A stretch of DNA of 63,106 nt, filler included, from Reticulomyxa filosa (Eukaryota; Protista; Foraminifera), in the NCBI GenBank assembly GCA_000512085.1. It is 21 parts of 21 records of this genome, joined end to end, with 100 filler letters (N's around TTAATTAATTAA, not from the genome) between each part and the next. Parts side by side here need not be neighbours in the genome. Positions count along the whole stretch, not along the records: positions 56,509 to 61,918 come from ASPP01011069.1; 20 more parts are not named here. One strand, written 5' to 3'. The notes below the pieces were generated by a model. It was not told the origin of the DNA, did not search any database, and was given only the letters and a program-made list of their open reading frames with translations. The position numbers and the translations under genes were made by a program. Positions within the stretch are counted from its first letter, which is position 1; the number at the start of each line of letters is the position of its first letter. Shown here piece by piece: positions 56,509 to 61,918 of the stretch.

Positions 56509-56551
<43 letters not shown>

Positions 56552-56575
56552 GGTTATATGTATACGTTTGACAGA

Positions 56576-57084
56576 GTATCAATGGGAGTGATTGTGAAAG
56601 TCAATTGGATCAAAACCAATTTCAGGTGTTCAATATACATTGTTATTTATTTGTTTAAGTTTGTTCTCTCTTTCAAAAAAAAAAAAAAAAAAAAACAATA
56701 AACAATAAATAAAACAGTTGACCCCTTCTTTTTGGTGTGATGTTCCTTCTTTACTTGAAACAGCCGTATCATGTGTCTCCCAGTCATATGCAAACCTTCT
56801 CTCCGTATGACAGTAACTTTGCGCTGTTGTCTCCGGTCAATCACAATTCTCTTTGGCTGTCACCCAACAGCAAGCAAATGTTTGATGGCGGATCTGTTCA
56901 TACCAATTCAAATACTTTCAATTTCTCTGCACCTTCTCCTATGATCTTGAGTGCAAATTCCACCAACGGGGTTGATGCAATCAACTCGTCCCCATTGATG
57001 GTCCAAGGCCAAAGTCAGATTTCCAAATTTACCACAGCTTTGCCTATCCCGTCCACACCGCCAATTGTTGATTATGCACTTTGA
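56576..57084 (+). CDS. Ser/Pro-rich C-terminal exons of an unidentified protein
   Basis: Coding-like exon QPYHVSPSHMQTFSP...PPIVDYAL* after an AG acceptor. Confidence 0.4.
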
Positions 57085-58099
57085 ACTGCCGTAAAAAAGA
57101 AAAAGGAGTTCATATTCACTCAATAAAGGCGATCAAAAAAAAAACAACATTGCATGTGAGTAAATTTTAATAATGGATTATTTTCAATAAAAAAAAAAAT
57201 AATTTTTTTTTTTGTTGTGCGTGTACGTTCTTTCTATGTGTAATTGTCACAATGGAAAAAAAGTTTCGTGTATTCCTCGAACTAATGAACTGCAAAAGTA
57301 AAGTATGCTTCACCACGTAAATATTTTTTTTTTTTTTTGCTCAGTATTAATTTTAATGCAGGTTTTGATGTTTCATCTTTTTATTCGTACAATTTGTGTG
57401 AGAATTGGATATTACAATTTGGTACGCATTCAAAAAAAAAAAAGAAGAAAATTTGCTTTTTTAAATTGCATAACATTGTTGAAAGCAATGCTAGTAATGT
57501 AGCTATATCCTCGTTGTATTTAATTTTTTGATTGCACAAAGCCATACTAAAAGTAGAAAAGTCACAATGAAACATTGAAACACTTTTTAAGCTTCTTTTT
57601 TAAACAAATTTCTATTCTTTATCGGTTTTTTGTCGAGCTCATTTAAGTTTCTATTGAAATTTTCTCAGAAGAGTAAAACTTTGGTATTATTTTTTCTGGA
57701 AAAAAAGTCATGGTCAGATGTTGCTATGATATGCACTTCAAAACCCTTTTGTAAACAATAACAACTGTTAATTAATATTTATGATATTTACTGTCCAAAA
57801 AAATATCCAAAAGAATTGAAAATTTGCTGGGATTGGGCATTGTGCATTGCAGAGAAGATTGAACAACCATTAAAAAAATCAATAATGCCAATAGAATCAA
57901 AATACTTTGATAAAATGGAAGTAAAATTTAACAAATAGTCATAATTGTTTTCAATGCGAAAATAAAGAATTTCAATACAATTTGTTCGAAAACAATTTAA
58001 AAAATGTAAAATGAAACATTGTTTTTATTGTATCTTGTTTGTGACTGAATCAGTCAAAAGAAGAAAAGATCAAATCATTATCCAACGTTGATTGATGAT

Positions 58100-58165
58100 A
58101 ATGATATACAATTTGTTCTGGATCAGTTGATGAAAGTGTTAGTGTATGGGATATTCGATCAATAA
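58100..58165 (+). pseudogene. Remnant of the same WD40 family
   Basis: TICSGSVDESVSVWDIRS; DNA similar to 10785-10830 and 10930-10972. Confidence 0.55.
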
Positions 58166-58440
58166 AAAAATAAAATTACAAAAATTAAATAATTGTTGTG
58201 ATGTTCATTTATGTTATGATTTAGCAATACTTTAATTCGTGTCTATGTGAGCATATGAACTATTATATTTTAGAGATGAATAGCATAACTCTGTACAATC
58301 TTCAATGAGATCATTTAGTTAGAATAAAAAAACTCTATTTGAAAGAGGATGATCATATTTAGATGATATTCATACTTAATCGACAACCAAAAGAAACGTT
58401 CAAATTTAAGTCCACTTTGCTTTCAACAAATCAAACACAT

Positions 58441-60886
58441 TTACAAATTTTTCAATCTTAATTCGACTTTTATTGTCTTTTGATGATTTTTACCCAATTT
58501 TTGAATATAAATCGACAATGCATTTTCATAACATTTCTTTGCTTCCACTTTGTCTCCTTTTTCAAAATAGATATTTCCTAAAATACTATATGATTCACCA
58601 ATATGTGGATGATTCGAATCCAATTTACTCAATCTTAATTTCAATGCCTTTTTTCCAATTCCATCGCTTTTCCATATTCTTGTTTGCCACAATAAGCTGA
58701 TGCCAAATTTTTGTATGAAATAGCAACATCAGGATGATCAGATCCTAATTTATTTAGACTAATTTTTAAATCTTTTTCATGATATTCAATTGCTTTGTCG
58801 TATTCTCCTTTGCTATTGTAAGCAAGTCCCAAATTATTATATGAAGTAGCAACAGCAAGATGTTCAGGTCCTAATATATCTAATCTAATTTTTAAAGATT
58901 TTTCATGATATTCAATTGCTTTATCATATTCTCCTTTGTTGTCATAAACACATCCCAAATTGTTATATGAAACAGAAACTTCATAATTATCGTGCACAAA
59001 TTTATTTAATTTAATTTTTAATGATGTTTCATGATATTCAATTGCTTTGTCGTATTCTCCTTTCTTGTTATAAACACCTCCCAAATTATTATATGAAGTA
59101 GCAACATCAAGGTGTTCAGATCCTAATATACCTAAACTAATTTCTAAATCTTTTTCATAATATTCAATTGCTTTATCATATTCTCCTTTATATTCATGTG
59201 CTTTACCTAACTGGAAATAAGAATAAGCAACATCAATATGAAGATCGTGTAAGGTTTGCAATTGAACACAAAGCACAAAACGAAACAATTGAATTGCTTC
59301 ATTCACTTTTGATATATCTAATGTATTTTTTCCTAATTCCATTAAATTTTCTATATCAATAGGCCAAGGACAAGTAAAAACATGAGAACGGAAGTGACAA
59401 CGAATAACAGATGTATTAGTAGGAATAAGTTGTTGAGTAATGTGACAATTTCCAAATCCATCAATAATACAATCAACGGCATAAACGGATCCATCAATTG
59501 TGATATTATCAAATGTAATTATTTTTGAATGAAATGAGGAAATAGAATATGACTCAAGAATTAATTTCTTTTTCATATATTGACTTGAATCAATCATCAT
59601 TGAAAAAGGAATATTTTTTTGAGATAATTGACCATTTGAATTTGATTTTGCTAATTGTTCAATATTTGTTGCAACAACAACAATTCCTTGTTGTTTGTTG
59701 TTAATCATTTCATTTACCATTTCATGTGCTTTTTTATTTGCTTTATTCCATGAAACATCTTTATCAAGTTCAGCATTTGTACTTGATAAATAATTATTAT
59801 TAATATAAAGAAAGGCATGTCGATCACAAGTTGAAGTAAGTTGAATAATTTGCCCATTCAATGCTTTTTGTTTAGTTGATTTAGAAATTAACATTAGATT
59901 ATCATATAATGATTTTGATGATTTAATATTTTGTGATATGACATTGCAAAAACATTCAGTAAAATAACTTCCTTTTCCTTTATAAGGATTTGTCGAATTA
60001 AATATTGATTTTCCAGGAGTTATTGAAGATATTGTAATAGTATCTGATCCACAATTATACCATTGTTGATTAATTCTTTTTCGTTGTTGATGTTGTTCAT
60101 TTCCTCGATATACATTTTTAATATATATTTTAGGCTTGTTTAAAAAAACATTTGTATCATGTCCGAATAATTCTTGTACTTTTTTAAATGATTTATACTT
60201 ATCATCGTCTGATGTTATTAATATATCTTCGCCTTCTTCTTTTTCTTCTGATGTTGTATTACCATAACCACACCATACAAATATTAATGAATCATAACTC
60301 TTTTCAGCTATATTTATATAATATTTCATTAAAAAACGATTTAATTGTCTTAATGTCAATGATTCAGTTTCAGGTTTATTTGGATCATAAGTACAATAAA
60401 CTTCATATCCATATACTTCTTTAAATACATTTTTAAACATTATTAAATCTTCTTTCACATCCGGTAAATCATTTAAACTTTTATATTTCGCAGATCCTGT
60501 TAATAATACTAACGGGTTTATGATCTTGTGAAATTTTTCTTCTGGATTTTTTTTCTCATCATTGTCATGATCTACTTTGTCATCAGTTGTTATTGCTATT
60601 TTGATTTTAGAATAGACAAATAAATAACAAAACTTTGAATAAAATGGACAGAAAGGAAAACAGGTCTCGTTTTGAATGCAATTTTTAATTGTTTGTTACT
60701 GGTAATGTCGTTTCCATTATTGTCAACAATTTTAAATTGATGCATAGAATTTCTTGTTTTATCATTGTCGTTTTTGGCAGTATTAATAATCTCTAGCACT
60801 TTTTTTTTCAAGCTTTTTAATCTCAGGAAAACAAGTTTCACTTTATGAGTCTCTTTTTTAAGAGAAACAAAAGCTTTGTAAGGCAT
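58441..60886 (-). CDS. PB1-like domain + caspase-like (peptidase C14) domain lacking the catalytic dyad + TPR array; 38-nt intron at 60596-60633; frameshift at A6 58649-58654
   Basis: Exon 1: K5..FKIVDNNGNDITSNKQLKIAF. Caspase region: NPLVLLTG..Y..LNDLPDVKEDL..F..YGYEV..YDSLIFVWCGYG..LNKPKIYIKNVYRG. About seven 42-aa TPRs of the type VATSYNNLG.VY..KGEYDKAIEYHEK.L. Confidence 0.88.
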
Positions 60887-61139
60887 TCTTTTTATTTATT
60901 TATTAGATGAAATAAAAAAATTAGAAAAGTTCTGTCAACTCCAGTTTTTTTAAGCTCTCTTTTACATTTGTATTTTGAGCAACAAAATTATTTTATTGAT
61001 TTTTGTTTTATTGTCTTTATCTGAATATTTAATGGAATAATAACTAAAGTTCTGAAATCAATTCGAATGAAACAAAACTTGTTTTGTACTTTTCAATTAA
61101 AGTTGTTAACTTCAAGCAAATTGGTAAGAAATATATAAC

Positions 61140-61290
61140 TTTTACAATCTGATTACAAATGCAGCAAATTAACGTGTCCAATCTTTGTGACTCATTTGTC
61201 AACGAAATCCAAGCTTTACTGTAGCACTCAGAAAGAAAAAAGGCTGTTCCTTTATCTTCAATTTCTTCTTTTCTATCCGCTTCAAATGAC
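61140..61290 (-). pseudogene. Fragment of a RING/TRAF-type zinc-finger gene N-terminus
   Basis: CYSKAWISLTNESQRLDTLICCICNQIV resembles the first CxxC of a TRAF-like RING. Truncated. Confidence 0.35.
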
Positions 61291-61489
61291 AACATTACTC
61301 TAACTTCTAGAAAATCTAGCAAGTTTTTTTCCTCTAAAGGCTTTAGTTTGAAAGGGTGAATCTCAAACAAAGACTTTGTAGTTTTTTTTTTTAGTGAAGA
61401 AAGTTTTTAAAATAAGATAATTCAATTGAGCAAAATTAATACAAAACAAATTTTAGTGGTATGATATTTTTGAAACAACAATGAAATCT

Positions 61490-61877
61490 TGCAAGAAAAA
61501 GTATATTTTGTCGTTATTTAGAGGAGACATTATGGAATAAATATATTAATGATTCAAAACAATCTATTCCTGTTTATATTTCATTTCCAAAAGTATATAA
61601 TAAATAAAATGAAAAAGATATCATTTTACAAGCATTATAAATAAAAAGATTATTGATGCAATACTTGAAAAAGTATCATTTATATTTATTATGGATGGAT
61701 TTGATGAAATATATGATTTTTATCGTAAAAATGAAAATGAAAAATATTTTTATGATCGTTTTAATTTAAATCAATGGAATGCAAAAATAATTGTTACTTG
61801 TAGAAGTAAAGTATTAAATGATGGTATATTAAAAATAATTGAATTGGTATACATCATAATAATACATCAATTATGTA
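61490..61877 (+). pseudogene. NACHT-domain pseudogene, paralog of 2907-6503, interrupted by a transposon
   Basis: KSIFCRYLEETLW (post-Walker A), IPVYISFPK, FIFIMDGFDEI, FYDRFNLNQWNAKIIVTCRS. Contains in-frame stops and indels. Confidence 0.85.
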
Positions 61878-61918
61878 CAGTAGGTTGCAAAGAAACTGAA
61901 CGCCTAAAACATATCTTA
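61878..61918 (+). mobile_element. Terminus of the TA|CAGTAGG element inserted in the NACHT pseudogene
   Basis: TA|CAGTAGGTTGCAAAGAAACTGAACGCCTAAAACATATCTTA. Confidence 0.82.

Follow-up and report, generated by a model that had tools for sequence, protein, structure and literature searches.

A caspase-like protein of Reticulomyxa filosa with tyrosine at both catalytic positions, a PB1-like N-terminal domain and a TPR array

The gene RFI_15146 of the foraminiferan Reticulomyxa filosa lies on the minus strand of a 5,410-bp contig (ASPP01011069.1, positions 56,509 to 61,918) of assembly GCA_000512085.1, within the window analyzed here, a stretch of 63,106 nucleotides (nt) in which 21 parts of this genome are joined end to end. 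All positions count along this window, and the paralog loci used for comparison come from the same assembly. The translated gene is 100% identical to the R. filosa hypothetical protein RFI_15146, which UniProt labels as a Peptidase C14 caspase domain protein. The protein opens with a PB1-like N-terminal domain (N-domain), which a linker joins to a caspase-like domain; after this come a beta-rich middle domain (about 150 residues) and six tetratricopeptide repeat (TPR) units of the kinesin light chain type. The catalytic His and Cys of the caspase-like domain are both replaced by tyrosine.

The gene consists of two exons, and all searches were run by exon or frame piece, with the exons and the shifted C-terminal tail searched separately. 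Exon 1 (60634-60886) is an open reading frame (ORF) which starts with an ATG at 60886-60884, consists of 84 codons and one further base, the first of the codon that follows, and encodes the PB1-like beta-grasp N-domain. A phase 1 intron of 38 nt with GT..AG ends (60596-60633) is predicted from the difference in frame between exons 1 and 2; the GenBank model of the gene (P0001) has the identical exon 1/exon 2 junction, and four paralog loci share the same donor context, CAAAGTTTTGTT. From 60595 exon 2 stays open for 650 codons in DNA of approximately 26% GC, the composition found across the contig. It begins with an acidic/basic low-complexity linker (60537-60595), recognised from the translation and the family alignment and variable in length between paralogs. 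This is followed by the caspase-like (Peptidase_C14) domain without its dyad (59808-60536; exon-2 residues 20-262), supported by Pfam, profile and model, and by the family-specific middle domain (59355-59807; exon-2 residues 263-413), described from the secondary structure of the model. The C-terminal TPR array (58444-59354), assigned by Pfam TPR_12 and TPR_10, is read in two frames owing to a frame break at 58647-58659. The stop codon of the shifted frame (58441-58443) lies where the paralogs also end.

A preliminary description of this locus had proposed a caspase fold with both catalytic residues changed to tyrosine, each through a single transition, and all of this was borne out. Pfam matched exon-2 residues 29-242 to Peptidase_C14 (PF00656) with 46.3 bits against a gathering score of 21.4 (E = 5.4e-12). 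A PDB search with the caspase region as a single sequence returned only noise (designed TIM barrels, and caspase-7 at E = 0.97), and a family profile was therefore needed; the profile of 25 family members matched caspase-3, caspase-7 and CED-3 and nothing else in the PDB. When aligned with caspase-3 and CED-3 by profile, the tyrosine of WCGYG (TAT at 60264-60266, exon-2 residue 110) stands opposite the catalytic His (..SHG) and that of KNVYRG (TAT at 60108-60110, exon-2 residue 162) opposite the catalytic Cys (QACRG/QACQG). The paralog RFI_27043 (P0003), which has an intact dyad, carries CAT and TGT at the same two codons, so that both tyrosines are one transition away from the catalytic residue. 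As to the Arg residues by which caspases bind the P1 aspartate, the CED-3 Arg of PTRNGT, which precedes the first helix, falls opposite a family-consensus Leu in a gapped and unreliable part of this alignment.

Structure prediction agreed with the profile. The AlphaFold2 (AF2) model of exon-2 residues 15-455 (441 residues) has a mean predicted local distance difference test score (pLDDT) of 81.6, and puts one tyrosine at the C-terminal end of strand 88-99 and the other at that of strand 141-149, the location of the dyad in caspases. Foldseek matched the model of the caspase region to caspase-9 (E = 1.5e-9), CED-3 and caspase-3, all at E of about 1e-9. Among the highest scores in VIA-align were those for Sf-caspase-1 (Z 23.3), CED-3 (Z 22.1) and the protease-like domain of FLIP(L) (3h13; Z 21.4), with caspase-9, caspase-3/-8, caspase-4 and Dronc also at Z 21-23 and 195-217 residues aligned for the caspases, whereas MALT1 (Z 19.8), metacaspases (Z 15-18) and SAVED-CHAT (Z 13.4) scored lower. 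Because the profile matched caspases only, and because of this difference in Z, the domain as modelled stands closer to true caspases than it does to the paracaspase MALT1 or to metacaspases. With the C14A caspases (caspase-3, caspase-9, CED-3 and Sf-caspase-1) it shares the fold, the stretch KPK(I/L)F ahead of the Cys position and a GSYF motif which is the counterpart, in the profile alignment, of caspase GSWF; it differs in its Tyr/Tyr pair, in the lack of a death-fold prodomain, and in the middle domain and TPRs that follow. RFI_15146 is thus a structural member of Peptidase C14, with the caspase/hemoglobinase fold, in which the catalytic His-Cys dyad is missing, and with tyrosine in place of both catalytic residues it is almost certainly unable to work as a cysteine protease.

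The family to which RFI_15146 belongs comprises about 100 N-domain representatives and is nearly restricted to R. filosa, with some three exceptions. Word-based searches identified 54 homologues, all 54 of them from R. filosa, and when the N-domain was used as a profile in an exhaustive search, 105 cluster representatives came out at E up to 1e-3, 81 of them at 1e-10 or better; some nine weaker matches, in multiple stretches of long proteins, were taken to be low-complexity matches. Among ten N-domain matches with a source looked up, seven were from R. filosa and three from elsewhere: P0125 (L004, Logan contig SRR32617133_125180), in which the N-domain is followed by an acidic, probably coiled-coil tail, and two JGI proteins, P0146 from a metagenome with a weak fn3 match beside the N-domain, and P0137 with repeated partial matches. 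Paralogs occur in tandem or inverted pairs. P0011, misnamed 'ABC transporter', stands in tandem with P0036 (L002:1026-6105), and a second N-domain lies head-to-head with P0003 at a contig edge (L003:1-165).

Both dyad sites could be read in 33 caspase-like domains of the family. The His site holds His in 16, Tyr in 16 and Asn in one, and the Cys site Tyr in 20, Cys in seven, Trp in two, and Ser, Glu, Asn and Ile in one each; an intact pair is found in six of the 33, all of which also keep the GSYF motif. A maximum-likelihood tree of the caspase-like domains, built without the two dyad columns, joined RFI_15146 with P0002, P0009 and P0036, all Tyr/Tyr, with support of 100/98. This clade of four is nested in a 14-member clade (95/99) which also holds four His/Cys members, the Tyr/Tyr protein P0011 and a five-member clade (100/99) of four His/Tyr and one Tyr/Tyr proteins. 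The fewest state changes on this tree were 10 for the His site and 11 for the Cys site, figures which are rough as many deep branches are poorly resolved. Loss of the dyad is recurrent across the family, and the Tyr/Tyr state of RFI_15146, given its position in an all-Tyr/Tyr clade, was inherited from the ancestor of the four rather than being private to this copy. The preliminary description had this copy act as a decoy or scaffold of the c-FLIP kind. The pair is not peculiar to the copy, the state being inherited in its clade and common in the family, and the copy is no special decoy, with 27 of the 33 domains lacking an intact dyad and some members lacking the caspase-like domain.

The ratio of nonsynonymous to synonymous substitution (dN/dS) was obtained by Nei-Gojobori counting on codon alignments, not by codon-model fits. 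RFI_15146 compared with P0002 over 505 codons gave dN 0.138 and dS 0.344 (dN/dS 0.40), and with P0003 over 629 codons dN 0.186 and dS 0.573 (dN/dS 0.32). On its own branch, by the three-point comparison over 494 codons, dN/dS was 0.28 (bootstrap 0.18-0.43) and reached at least 1 in none of 500 replicates; for the caspase-like domain only (225 codons) the own-branch value was 0.33 (0.17-0.65). P0002 is likewise Tyr/Tyr, the common ancestor of the two was by parsimony already Tyr/Tyr, and between them the caspase-like domain alone (225 codons) gave a dN/dS of 0.28-0.66. By these values the whole protein, including its dead caspase-like domain, has been kept under purifying selection since that ancestor. 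A simple pseudogene had been expected to show a dN/dS near 1, and the own-branch ratio of 0.28 argues that the gene is not one.

The frame break lies in the fifth TPR unit, where DNA alignment with the P0003 and P0036 loci shows 1 nt fewer than in the paralogs within GGAA-TT-GG-AAAAAA-GG (TT at 58658-58657 and A6 at 58654-58649), and leads to a premature TGA at 58643-58641. Beyond it the shifted frame is open for 71 codons up to the paralogs' usual stop, and this piece gave a TPR_12 match of its own (E = 2.1e-12). With a 650-codon exon 2 and one 1-nt gap, the gene is intact apart from a single slip, as first reported. At the matching GGAAA(A)G site the P0036 locus shows a separate gap of 2 nt (L002:6030-6160), and the coinciding gaps fit a hotspot for sequencing errors or one for slippage; the break itself would be an error of the assembly or else a lesion of very recent date. 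In the GenBank model P0001, compared with 58644-60593, an intron bridges the break and one complete in-frame 42-residue TPR unit is removed; we regard both the intron and the dropped unit as annotation devices, the genomic ORF being continuous at that TPR unit.

It could be argued that RFI_15146 is nonetheless a recent pseudogene, a dying copy in a family of fast turnover in which a real 1-nt deletion has cut off about 75 residues. This would account for the break and the premature TGA, and is in keeping with the visibly degraded P0036 locus, in which residues 190-329 are gone and the frame changes twice, with the many family members that are fragments in the databases, and with a GenBank model whose introns were invented to bridge the break. 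Against it stand the low own-branch dN/dS, the presence of just one lesion over some 2.3 kb of coding sequence at 26% GC, a shifted frame which runs open to the family's usual stop and still encodes TPR_12 repeats, and the location of the break in short homopolymer runs, which together with the second paralog gap at that site fits a systematic sequencing error. We consider a pseudogene rather unlikely.

Exon 1 had been likened to a PB1 module, and this holds for its fold but not for family membership by sequence. When folded by AF2 with an alignment that included 16 paralog N-domains, exon 1 gave a model with a pLDDT of 85.8 and the order b-b-a-b-(b)-a-b of a beta-grasp. In an exhaustive comparison of structures the top VIA-align match was the PB1 domain of MEKK3 (Z 9.9, root-mean-square deviation (rmsd) 1.6 over 71 residues), followed by the MEKK2/MAP2K5 PB1 complex (9.8), the PB1 domains of Par6 (9.6) and NBR1 (9.5), the Par3 N-terminal domain (8.9), Bem1 PB1 (8.8), and TFG PB1 with DREP3 CIDE (8.3), against a Z of about 7.5 for ordinary ubiquitin-like proteins. 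In Foldseek the PB1 domains of NBR1 and of PKCiota/Par6 came first (E = 0.014-0.05; AtNBR1 PB1 best at 0.014), and PB1 matches were interspersed with FERM, ubiquitin and CIDE-N. Searches of the ESM Atlas with the N-domain gave only sub-threshold leads (0.80-0.87), to TDP-43_N, GRHL1_C, PB1, the Par3 N-terminus and CIDE-N, and all of these are beta-grasp oligomerisers. Neither RFI_15146 nor any of the 17 family N-domains scanned matched Pfam PB1 (PF00564) at E up to 10, and the Pfam scan of the N-domain returned only chance-level matches (DUF896 and similar).

A Lys in beta-1 (K4 of RFI_15146, in the modelled strand 3-9) is present in 63 of 104 family N-domains, an Asp after beta-3 (D55) in 83, a Gly three residues on in 68 and a second Asp at position 64, which is Asn in RFI_15146, in 79, and 42% of the N-domains have an acidic D/E after the consensus Gly-x. 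The consensus reads roughly (F/I)-K-I-T-D-x-N-G-x-(D/E)-I-E-T-D-(E/Q)-x-L-x-x-A-F and is OPCA-like, with a Gly-to-helix spacing that we take to be about two residues shorter than in PB1, judging by the p62 motif. The acidic core of the OPCA motif is defined as D-x-D/E-x-D/E (PMC7051960); of these three core positions no more than one or two are acidic in the family consensus, and RFI_15146, a basic variant with many extra Lys in which the stretch reads D55-N-N-G-N-D60 and continues I-T-S-N-K-Q-L, has one acidic residue of the three. In P0125 and P0146 the post-beta-3 motif is more acidic (e.g., TDGEGYRIETDE) and closer to that of OPCA. The N-domain therefore resembles the PB1 domains of MEKK3, Par6, NBR1, Bem1 and p62 in topology (Z 9.5-9.9, rmsd 1.6-2.0 over 70-72 residues), in its beta-1 Lys and in an Asp-x-(N/D)-Gly ... 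Asp at beta-3/beta-4/alpha-2, and resembles other polymerising beta-grasps to a lesser degree (Par3 N-terminal domain Z 8.9, CIDE-N/DREP 7.7-8.3), but differs from PB1 in the lack of a Pfam match, in an identity of 8-23% and in a core reading D-N-N-G-N. Since the Pfam match is lacking and the acidic core is mostly missing, we call the domain, on the evidence of its model, PB1-like in fold, which is not to say a demonstrated member of the PB1 family.

The middle domain, which the preliminary description did not include, is modelled as a long helix followed by seven short beta-strands, and in it 24 members share invariant Y, D-G, Y, T and T columns. Searches with it found no Pfam match, no ESM Atlas lead and no sequence relative in the PDB outside its TPR-like end; the strand pattern gives the impression of a possible beta-solenoid. 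The TPRs placed by the first account after the caspase-like domain were verified: Pfam matched exon 2 to TPR_12 (PF13424; E = 2.1e-66) and TPR_10 (PF13374; E = 6.4e-38), and the array is made of a capping helix pair and six 42-residue units of the kinesin light chain type. No nucleoside triphosphatase (NTPase) family such as NACHT or NB-ARC was detected in the Pfam scans of any RFI_15146 piece, and a STAND-type assignment is not supported.

Two main architectures were found in R. filosa: the full form, and one whose N-domain is joined directly to the middle domain, with the TPRs behind it. Among the family architectures examined in this organism, neither an NTPase nor any other effector was seen as a partner domain. 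The DNA itself bears out the caspase-less form: in P0077 (L006:1242-2687) one uninterrupted ORF runs from the N-domain directly into the middle domain and TPRs, and at the P0013 locus (L005:3094-4830) the 172 nt between N-domain and middle domain hold no caspase-like remnant. A different arrangement is seen in P0016 (RFI_05622), where a His/Cys caspase-like domain is followed, at about residues 316-600, by a Cys/His-rich region in place of the middle domain and TPRs, which by its sequence looks like a TRAF/RING-type zinc finger. The conserved core of the family looks like N-domain, middle domain and TPRs.

This raises the alternative that the family is unconnected with proteolysis or cell death and that its core serves, for example, as an oligomerising cargo or cytoskeleton adaptor in the giant reticulopodial cell, with the caspase-like insert optional and mostly vestigial. 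The many members that pass directly from N-domain to middle domain, such as P0077 and P0013 with their continuous or nearly continuous coding sequence, speak for it, as do middle domains in P0012 and P0013 that are 82-84% identical to that of RFI_15146, the kinesin light chain type of the TPRs and the retention of the dyad in only six of 33 domains. It accords less well with the dN/dS of 0.33 in the dead domain, by which this domain is not vestigial in the Tyr/Tyr clade, and with the six members that keep His, Cys and GSYF. As an account of the family we find it improbable, although still to be taken seriously.

Our preferred reading, held with moderate confidence, is that RFI_15146 is a pseudo-enzyme whose role is that of a scaffold or regulator without catalysis. 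Homotypic contacts with fellow family members would be made through the N-domain, a surface for dimerisation or for peptide binding may persist in the caspase-like domain as it does in FLIP(L), the TPRs could bind a ligand or partner, and the six His/Cys paralogs are possible active partners. Several observations weigh against a scaffold or regulator. There is one break in the reading frame; this N-domain has lost the greater part of the acidic motif of the family; and family members without any caspase-like domain exist, so the dead domain may contribute little. The two Tyr columns are of about average conservation (42nd-59th percentile), and the preference for tyrosine may reflect mutation bias alone, because both replacements are GC-to-AT transitions in a genome of 26% GC. 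The dN/dS of about 0.3, moreover, covers the whole time since the split from P0002 and is compatible with a very recent loss of function. That RFI_15146 is still an enzyme with other chemistry, its two tyrosines forming a new active or ligand-binding site, is very improbable: Tyr does recur (20 of 33 at the Cys site and 16 of 33 at the His site, with at least 10-11 state changes per site), but its columns are no more conserved than average, the Cys site is also occupied by W, S, E, N and I, both changes are of the kind that mutation bias would be expected to yield, single GC-to-AT transitions, and we know of no clan CD enzyme that works without its catalytic Cys.

For the scaffold or regulator the closest functional analogy would be FLIP(L), which has R315 and Y360 at the catalytic His and Cys sites and acts as a regulator (PMC7586951). 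Both have a caspase fold without the dyad, with Tyr in place of Cys, both are accompanied by active paralogs, putatively so in this family, and the N-terminal homotypic-interaction module of FLIP has a putative counterpart in the N-domain. They differ in that FLIP has Arg at the His site, two DEDs and no TPR, while RFI_15146 has Tyr, a beta-grasp and TPRs, and in number, FLIP being one gene and RFI_15146 belonging to a family of more than 100 members, most of them 'dead'. The likeness to c-FLIP put forward earlier therefore stands in the parallel between the Cys-to-Tyr change and Y360 and is otherwise weaker than was held, because in this family the dead state prevails and whole subfamilies have no caspase-like domain. 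A second point of comparison is provided by prokaryotic and fungal proteins that join a caspase-like or CHAT domain to TPRs or WD40 repeats (orthocaspases, TPR-CHAT/Csx29), which likewise carry a protease-like domain of clan CD and a TPR array in one chain and form a lineage-expanded and variable family. RFI_15146 differs from these in being nearer to true caspases (SAVED-CHAT Z 13.4), in its eukaryotic intron and PB1-like N-domain, and in the absence of an NTPase or CRISPR partner.

The proposals of a TPR sensor and of an immune or cell-death role rest on analogy. Such a role is suggested, speculatively, by the lineage-specific expansion, the tandem arrays, the TPR arrays and the caspase fold, and a cytoskeletal or cargo-adaptor role is equally open. 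A more elaborate scheme would see in the family a caspase activation platform that arose independently in foraminifera, in which a prodomain of PB1 type, polymerising head-to-tail, stands in for CARD, DED or PYD, the TPRs sense ligands, His/Cys paralogs are activated by induced proximity and Tyr paralogs act as FLIP-like modulators in mixed polymers; we think this doubtful.

Just upstream of RFI_15146 a 108-residue ORF on the minus strand (61044-61370) encodes a Cys-rich LICCICNQ, followed by a possible GT donor, and has no Pfam match. Further on, a degraded P-loop/STAND-like NTPase is read on the plus strand in two frames (61485-61604 and 61613-61918), divergent from RFI_15146 and cut by the contig end. 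It has a Walker-A-like RKSIF..RYLEE and a Walker-B-like FIFIMDGFDEI in separate frames with stops between, and nSTAND3 at E = 0.054 was its sole Pfam match. A link between this neighbour and the family was considered and rejected; we treat it as incidental, since no such element was found beside three other paralog loci. At the other end, 56709-57108 forms an island of 43% GC in the contig of about 26% GC; this contains a 115-residue Ser/Pro/Asn-rich ORF on the plus strand (56737-57084) with no Pfam match, and is flanked by long poly-T/poly-A runs at the contig end (56509-56560 and about 56690).

Reticulomyxa's caspase-like proteins are not new to the literature, where they serve as an outgroup for the evolution of apoptosis. 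Klim et al. (2018) grouped them with animal caspases, in agreement with the structural comparison made here, and said nothing on TPR, PB1 or catalytic residues (PMC5982838). The literature searched made no mention of the architecture with its PB1-like prodomain, new middle domain and TPRs, of the prevalence of Tyr-substituted pseudo-caspases, of members without the caspase-like domain or of the result on selection; nothing relevant was found there on TPR or kinesin light chain in Reticulomyxa, or on pseudocaspases with Tyr. Proteins resembling true caspases are rare outside animals, and the outgroup used in work on apoptosis belongs to a caspase-like set made up largely of pseudo-enzymes, in which about four in five domains have lost the dyad, mostly to tyrosine as in FLIP(L). 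Copies with His/Cys, His/Tyr and Tyr/Tyr pairs, together with those without the domain, form a natural series which could show how a pseudo-caspase originates and what role it takes, and the family could show whether polymerisation through a beta-grasp can replace death-fold assembly.

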